Part shown: positions 7,560 through 63,620 of the stretch, piece after piece
How positions within the stretch are numbered: position 1 is the first letter of the stretch
How the letters are laid out: each line of letters opens with the position of its first letter
The notes under the pieces: generated by a model
Told to the model about the DNA's origin: nothing
The model's database searches: none
The model's input: only the letters and a program-made list of their open reading frames with translations
Made by a program: the position numbers and the translations under genes
Assembly (NCBI GenBank): GCA_950097015.1
Contig: CATNEN010000026.1
Span: 372,001 to 436,000, forward strand
Direction: 5' to 3'
Source of the DNA: Macrostomum hystrix
Lineage: Eukaryota; Animalia; Platyhelminthes
DNA: 64,000 nt

Positions 7560-7609
7560 TCGTATAATAGACGCGCGGTAACCAAGCGAAATCATCTGAA
7601 CGTTAAAAC

Positions 7610-7625
7610 GGCCCTTTTCAGGGCC
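7610..7625 (+). terminator. Replication-dependent histone 3' stem-loop
   Basis: aaaac-GGCCCTTTTCAGGGCC-acca matches the metazoan histone stem-loop, 50 nt after the stop. Confidence 0.97.
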
Positions 7626-8733
7626 ACCACATGTAATGATAATTACCAAGTCATAATTCGTTAGTACTGCTTAGTGGATCCACTAATTCATACATTTATA
7701 ACATTTTTATCATACTCACCAGGCGTAGTTCTACAATGGCATAAGTCACGACTAGGGTATGGGCCTAAAAATTATTTTAATAAAAAACATGAAACATAAT
7801 ATAAGCGTCATGTCATTATCGCTAGGCCCTACGACTAAAAGGTCTACTTATTTTTAAGAACTCACAGATTCTATATTACCCTAAATACTATCATCAAACA
7901 ATAAAAATCTAACAGATACTTTAACGTCAGTGCAGCAAAAAAATTGAGAGCGCAGAATGCTCAACATTGTTCAAATTGCGGAAATGTGGAAATTGACAAT
8001 GGTTAAAAAATAAATAAATAGCTTTCCTTAGCATAGGCCTACAGCTTTGTTGGCAAAGTTACAAAATTAAGAGCTACATACATATGCTCTTCGATAATAT
8101 AATATACCTGATGGCCAACTGTCAAGCCCGGCCTAGTTTCATGAACGCATGTGTACAAGAGATGTGTCATACGATCACATTTGTTTCTTTAATATACTGA
8201 AGGAATAGACACCGCAAATTAGGCCTAATACAGAAAAAAGCGTCACGATAATGAAATTTTGATAGCTCGACGCTTTTTATATTTCAAACAGTCCACTTGA
8301 CAACCTGTCTTCACTATGTAGGCCTAGTAAAATCACAATTCTGATATTTGCCAAGATTAGGCCTAGATGCGTTTTTGTACTTAATGTAAAGCGTAAAGGT
8401 AAAAGAAGTTTTTCAAGCCTTGATTATTTATATGATTTTTTAATCAGGGTTTGTAAAGCTTATTTTTTTACAAGGCCTACATGCGATTTGCCGGTTCTGT
8501 GAAGCACAATAACAAATACAACTGATCTGCTTCATCTGAATTAGTAAAATCATTAAAAAAAGAAGTGAAAATGTTGTAAAGAATGTTAAAACTTAGCGGC
8601 GCTTTAATCTTGATTTTACTGATTGAAGGAGTTTCTTATAAAAAAGTAGCTTCTGAACAATTACTCGCTTTTTAAAACAGCAATTACATTAGTATTTAGG
8701 TAAAGCTGTCTGGAAAACGTATTTCACATAAAA

Positions 8734-19100: not shown

Positions 19101-19898
19101 TTATGGAAAGGTGAAAATAGGGACGGGACGACTATGGAATAGGGAATGGGAATATGACATGGAGGGAACGTGGCCGTGGCCCATAGGGAGACGAGAGGCA
19201 TGAGGGATTGGGGGACTGAGGTTCAAGTAGCATAGCTGAGAAAAAGTGCATTTATTTCCAGCTGACGATTCAGTGCACTTTAAGCAAAGTTTGCAGTGGG
19301 CCGCAGCCGGCAGTACCATTCAGTTCAGTACGTGCACAGTTTTCACTCAGTTTTTTTTACTCTAAGTACGCATGAACACAATACGTAATGCAATGTGTGC
19401 GAGCTTTCATAGCAGTCCGTGTGCGTCTGTTCTGGTTCTCGCCTTTGCGCTTATCGCTTTCTTAAACTATTGTTTGCCCGTTGCAGCAATACCTCAAATG
19501 GAGAGAAGCATTCAGAGGAAGAACGGGCAACGGCAAGAGAGTTTGCATTTACATAATGTGCAATGTGCAGTGTGTGTACTGGGTACTGTGGGTAGCCAGT
19601 GTGCCGTGGTGGGTGTGTGGGTGGGGCGTGGACTTGGGCAAGGGTCGTAACGTAAGGATTCGTGAATTTATGAATTGAGTGTTACTTTGCGATATAGTAT
19701 AGACAATTTTTTATAAATAATGATTCATGTCAAATCACAGCAATGATGAAGTATTTCCCGGCCCGCCCGCAGTGCATATCTATGGAATTCGACCATAGAC
19801 AACAGCAGAGGGTGGGCTGCCGTTAGTTTCAACCTCGTATAAAATCCGACTGCTTATTTTATTGACAGTTATTGGGCTAATTCTTTGCCAGGAACGCC

Positions 19899-20019
19899 TA
19901 GTCTATGGTTTAAAGTGCTATAATTCCAGGACCATCAAATCATTTGATGGGCTCCAAAATGAAGACAATGAAATGATTTGATGGTCCCGAAATGAAAGCA
20001 GTTTGAACCATAGACTAAA
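19899..20019. repeat. Short nested palindromic element (outer 12-bp and inner 17-bp inverted repeats)
   Basis: tagtctatggtt..aaccatagacta encloses ggaccatcaaatcattt (19929-19945) / aaatgatttgatggtcc (19971-19987). Confidence 0.65.
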
Positions 20020-21689
20020 CAGAACTAAACAGTGTATTTAAATGCTACAAAAATAATAGGAATTATATACTGTGTAACGAAGCAACAAAAAGACAATTTT
20101 CTAGCAAAACTATAGACAATTGGACACATGTTTAGTTTCTTTCAATAATAGGCAGTGCATTAAACGTTTCACAAACTCACTTAAACTGAATTTCGATCAA
20201 TGATGATAGACTTGACACCATGGTCAGTAATAGACAGTATTGTCGCTATCAAATTCTTCTTCCATCGCGGTGTGGTTTAAGAAAAAGCTACAAAAGAAAG
20301 CAATTCGGATTTCGTCTAGCTATTACAGTCTTAAATTTATGGAAAATTTGTCTATGGTTCCAATGTGGGGGCTTTGCCCCGACACTCCCGATGGCTGCAC
20401 CGCATTCGGCGCGGTTCAAGAGGAAAATAAGCAAAACAAAACAAAAATAAGCAATTCGGATTTCATATAAGATCACGGTAGTTTAATGTGCATTCTATGT
20501 GCATTCTTTAATGAGCATCGCTCGCCTCGTGACCATCAAATGCAGCCTCGGACTTTCTAACCCTATAGAATGCGCATTAAACAGCCATGATCTAATAGTT
20601 CAACACGCGTAGGCTAACTACAACAATAGTTTCGCGTGATGGTGCTTTAGCTGTCCTTTAAGATTACATGATATTCCTTCCTTTCAGCGCTTTCCGATTA
20701 CACTGAATGACCTGATAGAAACTTTAGGAAATGAAAACGGAGAGTGTCTATGGCATTCAAAAGCCAATAGAAATGGAATAATTGCTTGCAAAATTATTTA
20801 CTTTTACATCAATCTCGCAGATCACAAGAACAAGTTTGAGACTTGATAGTTCTAATTCAAGTAACTTATAAGTAAGCTCGAATACATTTTCAAATAAGCT
20901 ATTGCGGTTCGCAGAATAATTGAAACACGAAATTCTGCAGCGCGATTTGCAGCGCAACGTGTAACTGGGCGAACGGGGTGCGTACATGGGGCGTACAGCT
21001 CCAATTTTCTCCAGGGCCAAAATACCTGTGGCTTGTCTGCTGCACACACACACATACACACACAAGGCCGCATACCCTTAAATGCTAAGATAGAGAGAAT
21101 AAAGTAGAAAACTATACGAGATTCTATACTTGTGGAAGGCAGCGAGCGTTGCAATCGAGGGCACCAAAGAGAGCTCAGAAACTATTACAAGTGTTTTAAA
21201 TTTTAACAGTGCAGCAGCAGCAGCCAGGGGCCACAAAGCCAGGCATTCAATATGCTAATTGCATTTACAGATTTTTAGCTATTTTAGCTTGCCTGTGCAG
21301 TAGTGTGATATCGGGAAAGATATTCATGAAGGAGGGAGAGAGGACAGTGGACAGGCGAGAGTGGACAAGTAGGGATAAGTATAAGAGCGAGGGAGAAATG
21401 AGGACATATATGATGTACTGTAGGAGGTACGAAGATGCACGGCTTGTATTCAGTCCGTGCTGAAGCATTTTGATTAACTATCTATATTAGTTTGCTCTCA
21501 AAAGACAAAAGCCAGTGCACATTCCTTGTACAGATGAAAGTGTTTATCTACCATAATTGTCTCATATTGACTCATTATACAATTATAAGTTTCATTTTGT
21601 TCAGAAAATTGCAAATCCTAAGATATTGAGTAGTAAATTATCCACATCGATCCATATTCATCATGATTGACCGACAATCCACAGTCCTC

Positions 21690-60781: not shown

Positions 60782-61195
60782 ATTGGTTGCAAGTGAGGAG
60801 TGAAAAGTGCCAGATTTCTCTCTCCTGTCTTGACGCTCATTGGTTGCAAGTGAGGAGTGAAAAGTGCCAGATTTCTCTCTCCTGTCTTGACGCTCATTGG
60901 TTGCAAGTGAGGAGTGAAAAGTGCCAGATTTCTCTCTCCTGTCTTGACGCTCATTGGTTGCAAGTGAGGAGTGAAAAGTGCCAGATTTCTCTCTCCTGTC
61001 TTGACGCTCATTGGTTGCAAGTGAGGAGTGAAAAGTGCCAGATTTCTCTCTCCTGTCTTGACGCTCATTGGTTGCAAGTGAGGAGTGAAAAGTGCCAGAT
61101 TTCTCTCTCCTGTCTTGACGCTCATTGGTTGCAAGTGAGGAGTGAAAAGTGCCAGATTTCTCTCTCCTGTCTTGACGCTCATTGGTTGCAAGTGA
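60782..61195. repeat. 57-bp perfect tandem repeat, about 7.3 copies
   Basis: attggttgcaagtgaggagtgaaaagtgccagatttctctctcctgtcttgacgctc repeated without visible variation. Confidence 0.97.
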
Positions 61196-61584
61196 GACGC
61201 CTATTATTTTAAAATAGCCACACGTCAATTTATCTGCGTACAATTGCTTTCCAGCATCTTCAAACACATTTTTGTAACCTACGAACTGTAAATAAATACT
61301 ATATAATATACTTCGCTGTTTGCTTCTAGTATATGGTACTCATTAGGGCAACCAGAAGTACAGCTTAAACATAATAAACAAAACATTCATTCTTTCGTTT
61401 AAATTATTTCTGCACAAGTAAATTTCAGAGGAAACAGAGTATTCGTGGTTGGTTAAATGCTACTTCGTAGAATTCATTTCCGTATATTGGTAATCATCCA
61501 AGGAACAAAATTTTGAACTACGCCAAAAATGTAGAAACAAATATCTTGTCACTTATTTTTTGTATGGCCACAATAATTATACAT

Positions 61585-63450
61585 ATATAGAGCATGGTGT
61601 GAGCCTTATAGTGCCCGCTATTTCAAGCAGATGGTTCACTGGCGGGCTTTATTTTTCGTCCATCTGTCTATGGGACATATATGGGCTTTAATTTGGCCCG
61701 ATAACCGCTATTTATTAAAGTAACAACAACAGTAGCAACACAGGGTGGTTAAAATCAACGTAGCAGGCAACAAAAACAAGTTAAAAAAGGCGAGTGAGAA
61801 AGGATTAGTTTGACGCAATTTTTCCATGTCCAATTATTAATTACCACACTACAATTGTTCAGATGGAAGTGGATTGCGATATCACTGCTTCGTGATTGTT
61901 CGTGGGCTGCACCATCGATCACAGCGGAACATTCTTGAAGTTGCACGTCACTGGTCCGTTTGTACTGGCGCACGCCGACCAAGCTCCTGTGGCCAGTTGT
62001 CTCCATGATTTTTTGTTCATCGAGTCCAGCATGGTACAATCTTGTGGCACAAGTGGCTCGCAGGCTGTGATTCCGCTTGTTTCCCTGGACACCCGATTCT
62101 TCACAGAGACGCTTCAACATGGTCGAAACGGTATTCTTCCCAAGTGGACGCTTGTTGTACAAACATGTCTCAGTAGGATTCCGCATTGCCTGCAGGCAAA
62201 AGCGACTGGTGTCTACTGGGCGTAAACTGACAAACTTCTTAAAGAGTCGAACATGGCTGCGTTCGAGCTTAGCAACGTCCGGATAGTGCAGGATTTCTTT
62301 GGGAGCAACGTGCTTGTCTTTCAGCCTCCAGTGAAGGTCTTTGAGTTTCTCTCTTGGTAGATCAGACACTCTACGCCGTCCCTGTTTTCAACTCGAAATT
62401 GGTCGATAGTCAGGTTACAATGTTCTTCGCGACCCCGAAGCGCGAAGTGCAGGCCATTAAGATAGAAGAGGGTGCGAGTCAGTTGGTCAGGGTTCTTGTC
62501 ACCAAGTTGCTTCTCCCAAAGTTGCGCTTCTTCTTCGAAAGAAATCGTTTCAGCGCTCTCGCGCTTTAGGCCATTGCCCTCTTTAGTAGAAATTTTCATA
62601 GCAGCATCAATCGAATCAGTGACGACTTTGAAGTCCTGACCCCGAAAGAAGTCCACGGGTGGACTTTTACTGCAAGTACTGGCCTGACGCTGTAGTCCAG
62701 CAGCGATGGAGACAATTGATCCAGGGGGATAGCGTTCTCCATTTTGTTTCCGAACCTCGTGGAAAAATCGCGGTAGCAAGTCCCGTAGCTGGTCGTGACT
62801 CAGTTCGCCAACCGTGTCTGGAAGTCGGGGGAATCTGGTAGCCATCCAGGCGGTGAACACTTTACTCGCCCACTTGTCTCTATCTAATGTCTTTGATGAC
62901 TTCATACTGTGGTTAAGAGCCATGGCATCTTCAAAAGTTATTGCTGATCCGAAGCGATTCGATTGAGACGTTCCGGACTCCTCCGACGTAGCTGTTGTCA
63001 TGTAGCTGCCAGTAGTTACGACGGCTGAGATATCATGATGTTTACGAAGGTCTCCACCGTCAGATAAAACAGCATCGATGTCAGATTGACGCAGTCGATT
63101 CGGATCGAAATCACTAACAAAGTCTTCTCTATAGTCTACAAGTGGATTTATTCTATATGACTCTTCCATCGCAGAGCAGATGTAAAGATAAGACTCGTTC
63201 GCTTAATTTGTGGCTCAGCTCAATTCGCCTTCAGCTGGCTTATACTGGTCAACTTTAGCTCGGGCCATAGACAAATAAGCTGCTACGTCGAGCACCGAAA
63301 GTGAATTTCTTAGTTATCTCAGCTCGCTAGCTCATAGACTGGTCAACTGAATTTGGCCATAGACATAAACTGCAACCAGCCGTCTAATTTTTTCGGGCAC
63401 TATTTAGCTAATGCCCGGAATATCTATAAGGCTCACAACATGCTCTATAT
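61585..63450 (-). mobile_element. Crypton-type tyrosine-recombinase DNA transposon, about 1.87 kb
   Basis: 27-bp inverted repeats (61585-61611 / 63424-63450, 1 mismatch) enclose a single recombinase gene. Confidence 0.85.
61755..63169 (-). pseudogene. Crypton/DUF3504-like tyrosine recombinase, about 471 aa, split by one 1-nt frameshift near 62325
   Basis: KWASKVFTAW, FFHEVRKQNGERYPPGSI, FALRGREEH (R), RNSKT (K), NHSLRAT (HxxR), TGHRS (H), VRQYKR (Y). Confidence 0.9.
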
Positions 63451-63469
63451 GAGATAAAGCACGACTTGG

Positions 63470-63620
63470 GGGTAGAACAGCGGCAGGCTTGAGGATAGAA
63501 CAGGGGCAGACTTGGGGGTAGAACAGAGGCAGACTTGGGGGTAGAACAGGGGCAGACTTGGGGGTAGAACAGGGGCAGGCTAGAGGGTAGAACAGACGTG
63601 AGGGTAGAACAAGGGCAGGC
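63470..63620. repeat. 23-bp G-rich minisatellite (ttgggggtagaacaggggcagac)n
   Basis: Tandem copies 3' of the PSMG3-like gene. Confidence 0.85.

Follow-up and report, generated by a model that had tools for sequence, protein, structure and literature searches.

A probably dead, sole full-length copy of a CryptonA-like DNA transposon family in the flatworm Macrostomum hystrix

The CryptonA elements described from animals (Crypton-1_SP, CryptonA-1_SK and Crypton-1_NV) contain a single intronless gene of ~450 amino acids (aa), whose product has a DUF3504 domain and an R-H-R-Y tetrad; they have neither an extra C-terminal domain nor a reverse transcriptase, and copy number per family is low (PMC3212892). 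An element with these same features is present in a 64,000-nucleotide (nt) stretch of the genome of the flatworm Macrostomum hystrix (contig CATNEN010000026.1, positions 372,001 to 436,000), the whole of which is referred to here as the window. The termini differ: no terminal repeats were found in the animal Cryptons and the classical description is of 4- to 6-bp terminal direct repeats (PMC3212892), whereas the window element has 27-nt inverted ends. The host also differs, as Platyhelminthes are absent from the list of Crypton hosts in the same study, which names flatworms only for WOC fragments. In another group, the CryptonS elements of oomycetes, TATGG termini have been reported as a common feature (PMC3212892). 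The analyses described below indicate that the window element is probably dead and is the only full-length copy of a CryptonA-like DNA transposon family, of which the assembly contains no living member.

Comparisons were made with other DUF3504 or tyrosine recombinase systems. Glomhoppers, which are CryptonA elements of Glomeromycota, resemble the window element in having DUF3504, a full seven-residue active site, mostly truncated or broken copies, a location in repetitive DNA and variable terminal repeats, but they are fungal, are present in hundreds of copies and are often intronized, while the window family is from an animal and has a single full copy (PMC13465315). Domesticated DUF3504 genes (WOC/ZMYM2-4, QRICH1, KCTD1 and KIAA1958) resemble the window gene in the DUF3504 fold and in an N-terminal domain of the QRICH1 type. 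These host genes, however, no longer have the catalytic Tyr or the second Arg (Kojima & Jurka 2011, PMC3212892), in agreement with an earlier note made from the window sequence alone, and they are fused to host domains, conserved and intact; the window gene has all of the catalytic residues and no fused domain, is still attached to transposon ends and is broken. None of the marks of a domesticated gene (catalytic loss, fused host domains and an intact frame) was, therefore, found in the window gene. In DIRS and Ngaro elements, a tyrosine recombinase is accompanied by a reverse transcriptase and RNase H, the long repeats are split or inverted and the recombinase does not match DUF3504, in contrast to CryptonA recombinases, which do (PMC3212892). 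Pfam searches of the open reading frames (ORFs) neighboring the window recombinase detected no reverse transcriptase, RNase H or other domain.

The window element, on the other hand, has the R-H-R-Y tetrad together with the K, E and second H, a DUF3504 match, a single gene and dispersed copies indicative of past mobility, and the earlier identification of a Crypton tyrosine recombinase was thus upheld. The absence of terminal inverted repeats and the presence of 4- to 6-bp direct repeats, as in known Cryptons, were not observed. Since such ends are a descriptive trait of the families known so far and not a mechanistic requirement, the element is still classified, on the sequence of its enzyme and its one-gene architecture, as CryptonA-like with atypical ends.

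The recombinase gene was detected on the minus strand as two ORFs, ORF A (62321..63169; 282 aa plus TGA) and ORF B (61755..62369; 204 aa), which overlap by 49 nt in different frames. The corresponding pieces A and B were searched separately throughout. Piece A matched positions 2-58 of the 162 in the DUF3504 model (PF12012; E = 1.1e-12; 48.8 bits with a cut-off of 29.7) and the QRICH1 domain (E = 1.6e-6; 28.6 bits, slightly below the Pfam cut-off of 30.8 bits), while piece B matched DUF3504 positions 89-161 and Phage_integrase (E = 9.4e-14). The DUF3504/Phage_integrase profile matches proposed as a check by the earlier note were, therefore, both obtained, that to DUF3504 being split over the two pieces, and, as the pieces match the two halves of one domain, ORF A and ORF B are the halves of a single gene. 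Alignment with seven intact relatives of 430-498 aa (five from public protein collections and two from the same genome) demonstrated that the pieces abut at SKTxxGG/LKxxR with nothing missing.

The active site was examined by alignment with the same relatives and with the archaeal XerA (PDB 5hxy). In piece A, ALRGREEH and NSKT aligned with the invariant ALRGGEEH and SKT of the seven intact relatives; in piece B, HSLR, TGHRS and RQY aligned with HvLR, GHaS and iY of XerA. The search of PDB sequences produced only weak recombinase matches (E = 0.0035 for XerA), which were utilized for residue alignment and not for naming the protein. The active site described for DUF3504 recombinases has seven residues (two Arg, two His, Glu, Lys and Tyr; PMC13465315), each of which was present. 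These alignments bore out the observation that R, K, HxxR, H and Y had all been retained and added the Glu. Apart from the frameshift, no in-frame stop was detected in either piece, again as noted earlier.

The frameshift is due to the loss of one base. At the junction, the minus strand of the window reads AAG ACC TTC ACT GGA GGC TGA, with the frame of piece B taking CTG AAA GAC from the same letters. In a MAFFT alignment, sister copies on two other contigs, C7:8554932-8556097 and C39:15387232-15388463, carried ACTGGAGGCCTGAAGGAC where the window has ACTGGAGGC-TGAAAGAC, such that GGAGGCCTG in the sister copies is opposed to GGAGGC-TG in the window, and the C7 copy translates straight through as SKTFTGGLKDK. 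As the C7 and C39 copies read ACTGGAGGCCTGAAGGAC in one frame, exactly one base has been lost at this junction. The lesion had been ascribed to a G run, but the base that is missing, a C, belonged to a CC pair (GG on the plus strand), a two-base run with no homopolymer tract. An intron bridging the shift was rejected, the sole available GT..AG being of 13 nt and the relatives being colinear without a gap, as was programmed frameshifting, the sister copies reading through with one more C.

It had been suggested that the missing base was a long-read assembly error and that the gene is intact in the animal; the site is within GGAGGC and long-read assemblies do make indel errors. Logan contigs from four public runs (X3, X4, X5 and X9), derived from three studies, were, therefore, examined over 61300-63462. 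Contigs crossing 62321-62330 were found in all four runs (62203-62963 in X3, 62203-63369 in X4, 61739-63193 in X5 and 62208-62425 in X9), with 0 gaps and 0 other letters relative to the window, and the X5 contig spans the whole ORF pair. An inserted base at the frameshift site was present in no contig of these runs. The length of the run, only two bases, also speaks against such an error, as does Illumina polishing if the window assembly is the published one, a PacBio assembly of ~220 Mb in 42 contigs from the inbred line SR1 (PMC10468722). An intact gene obscured by misassembly is, hence, barely credible; the missing base is real.

Side observations were made on two of these data sets. Internal pieces of X9, a low-depth run filed under another organism, were 100% identical to the window (62208-62425, including the frameshift site, and 62633-62873), while its left junction (61410-61625) had 6 differences and 1 gap in 215 nt; the source of X9 may be another species, another strain or carry-over. 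For X4 and X5, both from a 2020 study, the element was covered over 61603-63369, with slight coverage of the left flank in X5 and none in X4. The total contigs of these runs amount to only 46-47 Mb, about a fifth of the 220-Mb genome, and so the runs may be RNA-seq, in which case the broken gene may be transcribed.

Comparison with close relatives detected further damage specific to the window copy. Three relatives (the C38 fragment, which is 87% identical, C24 and C39) close the gene with AATAATTAG while the window has AATAATTGG at the same site (Table 1). As this ancestral stop has been lost (TAG to TGG) and 25 extra codons are read, the native protein is of 446 aa and not 471 aa, with the native C terminus (...NCSVVINN) ending together with those of the relatives. 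An AATAAA is present ~115 nt downstream from the native stop codon. The proposal that the two ORFs join into a protein of ~471 aa was, therefore, correct in that two halves are separated by one missing base but not with regard to length, the last 25 codons being read-through. A Tyr-to-Cys change and a Trp-to-Leu change were also detected, both private to the window copy since the C29 fragment keeps both residues, C7 has the Tyr and C39 has the Trp. The former position is occupied by Tyr in 30/30 aligned relatives from the same genome, being as invariant as the catalytic residues, and the latter is aromatic in 29 of the 32 relatives from this genome with a residue there. It is literally correct that this gene is a single base short of a full ORF, but a lost stop and private missense changes at conserved positions have to be added to the frameshift.

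The status of the family was investigated by searching the assembly (220,453,370 bases in 42 contigs). Protein searches produced ~150 matches for each half of the recombinase, with near-identical matches only at the window locus. By DNA, the next full-length kin were broken and had 72-73% identity over most of the gene, rising to 76% over the last third. Kin at 85-94% identity were fragments only, of 120-250 bp, located on five other contigs and including a 5′ end starting at the terminus and a solo end; examples are the C30 fragment (85%, internally deleted), the C38 fragment and the C29 fragment (94% over 120 nt). A 26-nt end word, allowing ≤3 mismatches, occurred three times in 220 Mb, at the two ends of the window element and at the solo end (C7:4976375). 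No second full-length copy was, therefore, detected in the assembly by protein, DNA or end-word search. Read depth in X3 was 71-85 for the element contigs and 65.6 for the unique flank, a similarity that points to a single copy per genome and to the absence of hidden identical copies. None of the contigs of the four runs skipped the element, so that no empty site or polymorphic insertion was observed. Two joints in X3 were considered as an empty-site signal and rejected, as they belong to paralogous fragments, the 61983-to-62330 joint matching the internally deleted C30 fragment. Outside this genome, only 10 related proteins were found (155-493 aa searched), none of the window family and none representing an intact version of this gene; the nearest were metagenomic or Logan proteins of ≤52% identity, the best having 52%.

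The earlier note had inferred a young or possibly active family and had proposed a search for other copies with an open frame. No such copy was found in the window's family, and the full-length kin, at 72-73%, are broken. All family copies carry disabling lesions, an outcome that the note itself had listed as evidence against its proposal, and a young or active family is also at odds with the lost stop, the missense changes, the neutral-looking pattern of change (see below) and the presence of one full copy and fragments diverged from it by 6-15%. A related explanation is that the window copy is a recently inactivated member of a low-copy, still-active family, whose master copy is in wild populations or in unassembled DNA. 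The private divergence of the window copy is only ~1.3%, its inverted ends are 96% matched and its catalytic set is complete; Cryptons are typically maintained in very few copies (PMC3212892), the same genome contains clearly recent sister families, and the whole gene is contained in the possible RNA runs X4 and X5, a hint of transcription. These points have to be set against the failure of three types of search to detect a second full-length copy, a read depth close to that of single-copy flank, and the fragmentation and divergence of all other members, and continued activity of the family is, thus, unlikely.

The selective history of the gene was examined through the ratio of nonsynonymous to synonymous substitution rates (dN/dS). 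Comparisons of the window copy with C7 or C39 gave a dN/dS of 0.11-0.12 at a dS of 1.2-1.4, indicating that the deep divergence took place in working genes. Between C7 and C39, dN/dS was ~1.0 at a dS of 0.05, indicative of two dead copies of a sister family. Changes were then polarized by comparing the window with three close fragments, using more distant copies as a reference. Six window-specific changes were found over ~457 native coding sites (1.3%): K to E, D to E, Y to C, W to L, the stop loss and one silent change. If omega were still 0.12, it would be improbable (P = 0.005) for five of the six changes to alter the protein, a proportion that is compatible with neutrality; in this small sample (5 altering versus 1 silent), purifying selection on the private substitutions was not seen. 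The private changes of the fragments were far more numerous (for example, 15 versus 3 for the window in the C30 comparison), indicating that the fragments are older than the window copy. At 1.3% neutral divergence, ~0.7 new stops would be expected in 446 codons, with a probability of 0.49 of there being none, and the absence of further stops is, therefore, unremarkable. Likewise, the survival of the catalytic residues is explained by the shallowness of the decay, with only ~1.3% private divergence.

These data also bear on whether the 282-aa N-terminal product, or the whole locus, has been co-opted by the host, for example for damping of the many active Cryptons. Crypton recombinases have been domesticated repeatedly (PMC3212892), and the locus is single copy, has a low dN/dS relative to the sister family and is possibly, on weak indications, transcribed. 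The low dN/dS belongs, however, to the deep branch, while the private changes look neutral; the frameshift, the lost stop and the changes at invariant residues also speak against this reading; and the gene has no fused host domains, retains its own inverted ends and has all of the catalytic residues that domesticated genes have lost. Co-option is, consequently, very unlikely. The 282-aa product comprises the half that binds DNA and has the first catalytic Arg, the Glu and the Lys, whereas it lacks the HxxR and Tyr. A still more speculative proposal, to which we attach hardly any weight, is that the broken copy is transcribed and that this product binds Crypton ends and acts as a dominant-negative brake on related mobile Cryptons; if true, this would be a first step of the type of domestication behind WOC/ZMYM.

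The interpretation most consistent with these results is that of a dead element from a family that once had a working enzyme. In the live element, a tyrosine recombinase of 446 aa would have been responsible for cutting and rejoining DNA at the element ends, with excision as a circle being followed by site-specific reintegration, as in the accepted Crypton model known from the literature. The lineage was under strong purifying selection as a working recombinase, and selection on the window copy then ceased. The loss of one C split the gene at a point after the catalytic Lys and before the HxxR box, the stop codon was lost, and the Tyr-to-Cys and Trp-to-Leu changes were gained at conserved positions. 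As no other member is whole in the assembly, the family appears to be extinct, or nearly so, in this genome.

Several points weigh against this interpretation. The agreement of the four runs eliminates an assembly artifact without demonstrating fixation in the species, as all of the runs may stem from a single inbred laboratory line (SR1), and a minority intact allele is possible because Logan contigs lose rare variants. The low private divergence and the matching of the inverted ends at 26/27 positions indicate that the copy is not old. The polarized sample covered about one third of the gene and contained six changes only, and the two missense changes would impair the enzyme according to a prediction whose sole basis is conservation. 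Finally, other individuals or unassembled DNA could harbor a working master copy.

Table 1. Coordinates of the element, of its gene and of related loci (window positions unless a contig is given)
Feature	Position	Strand	Details
Whole element	61585..63450	-	1866 bp; 27-nt inverted ends; one gene; no other domain
Inverted-end arm, 5′ end of gene	63424..63450		27-nt inverted repeat
Inverted-end arm, 3′ end of gene	61585..61611		27-nt inverted repeat
13 nt outside 5′ arm, CGTGCTTTATCTC-like	63451..63463	-	Alignment of four 5′ ends
Piece A, 282 codons	62324..63169	-	N-terminal region, QRICH1-like domain, first recombinase half with R, E and K
Catalytic Arg I (ALRGREEH)	62435-62437	-	Alignment with intact relatives
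Catalytic Glu (ALRGREEH)	62426-62428	-	Alignment with intact relatives
Catalytic Lys (NSKTF)	62339-62341	-	Alignment with intact relatives
One-base deletion site	62324	-	Single C where sister copies have CC (GGAGGCCTG)
Out-of-frame TGA ending piece A	62321-62323	-	ORF listing
Piece B, native part (LKDK...VVINN)	61833..62323	-	Second recombinase half with HxxR, H and Y; first codon also uses C at 62324
Private Tyr-to-Cys (RFYL to RFCL)	62196..62198	-	C29 fragment (94% identical) and C7 keep TAC
Private Trp-to-Leu (TCWYN to TCLYN)	62160..62162	-	C29 fragment and C39 keep TGG
HSLR, His II and Arg II	62058..62069	-	His 62067-62069, Arg 62058-62060; aligned with XerA HvLR
His III (TGHRS)	61989-61991	-	Aligned with XerA
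Nucleophile Tyr (VRQYK)	61962-61964	-	Aligned with XerA
Lost ancestral stop	61830..61832	-	TGG here; TAG in C38 fragment, C24 and C39; polarized as window-specific
Read-through tail	61755..61829	-	24 further codons and present stop; without counterpart in any relative
Sister-family loci L004-L007	C1:24169225, C31:2855995, C12:529355, C1:904751		
Sister-family loci L014, L021, L011	C11:3812087, C25:9464281, C38:10775814		

The limits of the element were defined by its inverted ends, in which 26 of 27 positions are complementary (96%), and the recombinase gene is the sole gene in the 1.87 kb between them. The match to a 5′-end fragment at C1:1550462 (88% identical) begins precisely at 63450, and the ends of the C39 copy are homologous to those of the window element. 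Immediately outside the 5′ arm are 13 nt that are common to the C39 and C7:4976375 copies and, weakly, to C1, with the DNA matches of other copies ending at 63463; these 13 nt may belong to the element or represent a preferred target. Upstream of the arm in C39 and C7:4976375, the DNA is similar to that located directly inside the arm (TAAGTAAAT.GTGCCCGGAAAA), as if elements land beside look-alike ends. No clear flanking direct repeat was detected around the window element. A locus of ~500 bp at C29:5669706-5670208 carries two inverted copies of the 3′ subterminal region (94% and 91% identical), between which is a 120-nt internal piece (94%). This locus may represent a derivative of the window family, either rearranged or miniature.

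The setting of the element is an intergenic, satellite-rich stretch. A 57-bp tandem array (60782-61196; 7.3 copies with 100% matches) flanks the element on one side and a 23-bp satellite (63463-63595; 5.8 copies) on the other, the unit of the latter being found again in arrays on several further contigs. There are 13 occurrences of the word GTCTATGG in the window as compared to 1.3 expected by shuffling, with 13 being reached in 0 of 100 shuffles. Three sites are near the element ends, at 61666-61673 (+), 63265-63272 (-) and 63357-63364 (-), and the others are at 2406, 19793-20753 (five sites), 26782, 48535, 48771 and 59261. The five-site cluster at 19.8-20.8 kb, in which there is no match to a recombinase, may consist of non-autonomous Crypton derivatives. 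The sole Rfam match in the window was a histone 3′ untranslated region stem-loop at 7605-7651 (RF00032; 35.8 bits).

The genome also contains sister families whose recombinases have 40-47% protein identity to that of the window. These share with the window element the same architecture and the motifs NPLVDY..., ALRGGEEH, SKT..GG, NHSLRATCATRLY, TGHRS and YKRTS. The sister families are young, with near-identical open copies, and differ in this respect from the window family: several copies are 97.5-99.6% identical in nucleotide sequence with open frames of 433-498 aa, and some of these are 98.9-99.6% identical with open frames of 433-450 aa. Judging from such comparisons, the sister families qualify far better than the window element as candidates for animal Cryptons that are currently mobile. 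The view that Cryptons are rare does not hold for M. hystrix, given the ~150 recombinase matches and the near-identical open families in its genome. A search of the available literature found no paper on Cryptons in Macrostomum, and the M. hystrix genome paper leaves repeat content uncharacterized (PMC10468722).

By itself, this locus adds one further example of a decaying transposon copy, and the hope that an intact, possibly active Crypton would be present here was not borne out. A complete catalytic set interrupted by a single visible frameshift is no proof of youth or activity; the lost stop and the changes at invariant residues were exposed by comparison with close fragments and were invisible from the sequence alone. 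The wider finding is that the M. hystrix genome is unusually rich in CryptonA-like elements, with inverted ends in at least the window family and with several families that look recently mobile. Macrostomum is, therefore, a good place for studying the movement of animal Cryptons, by way of the intact sister families and not of the window copy.

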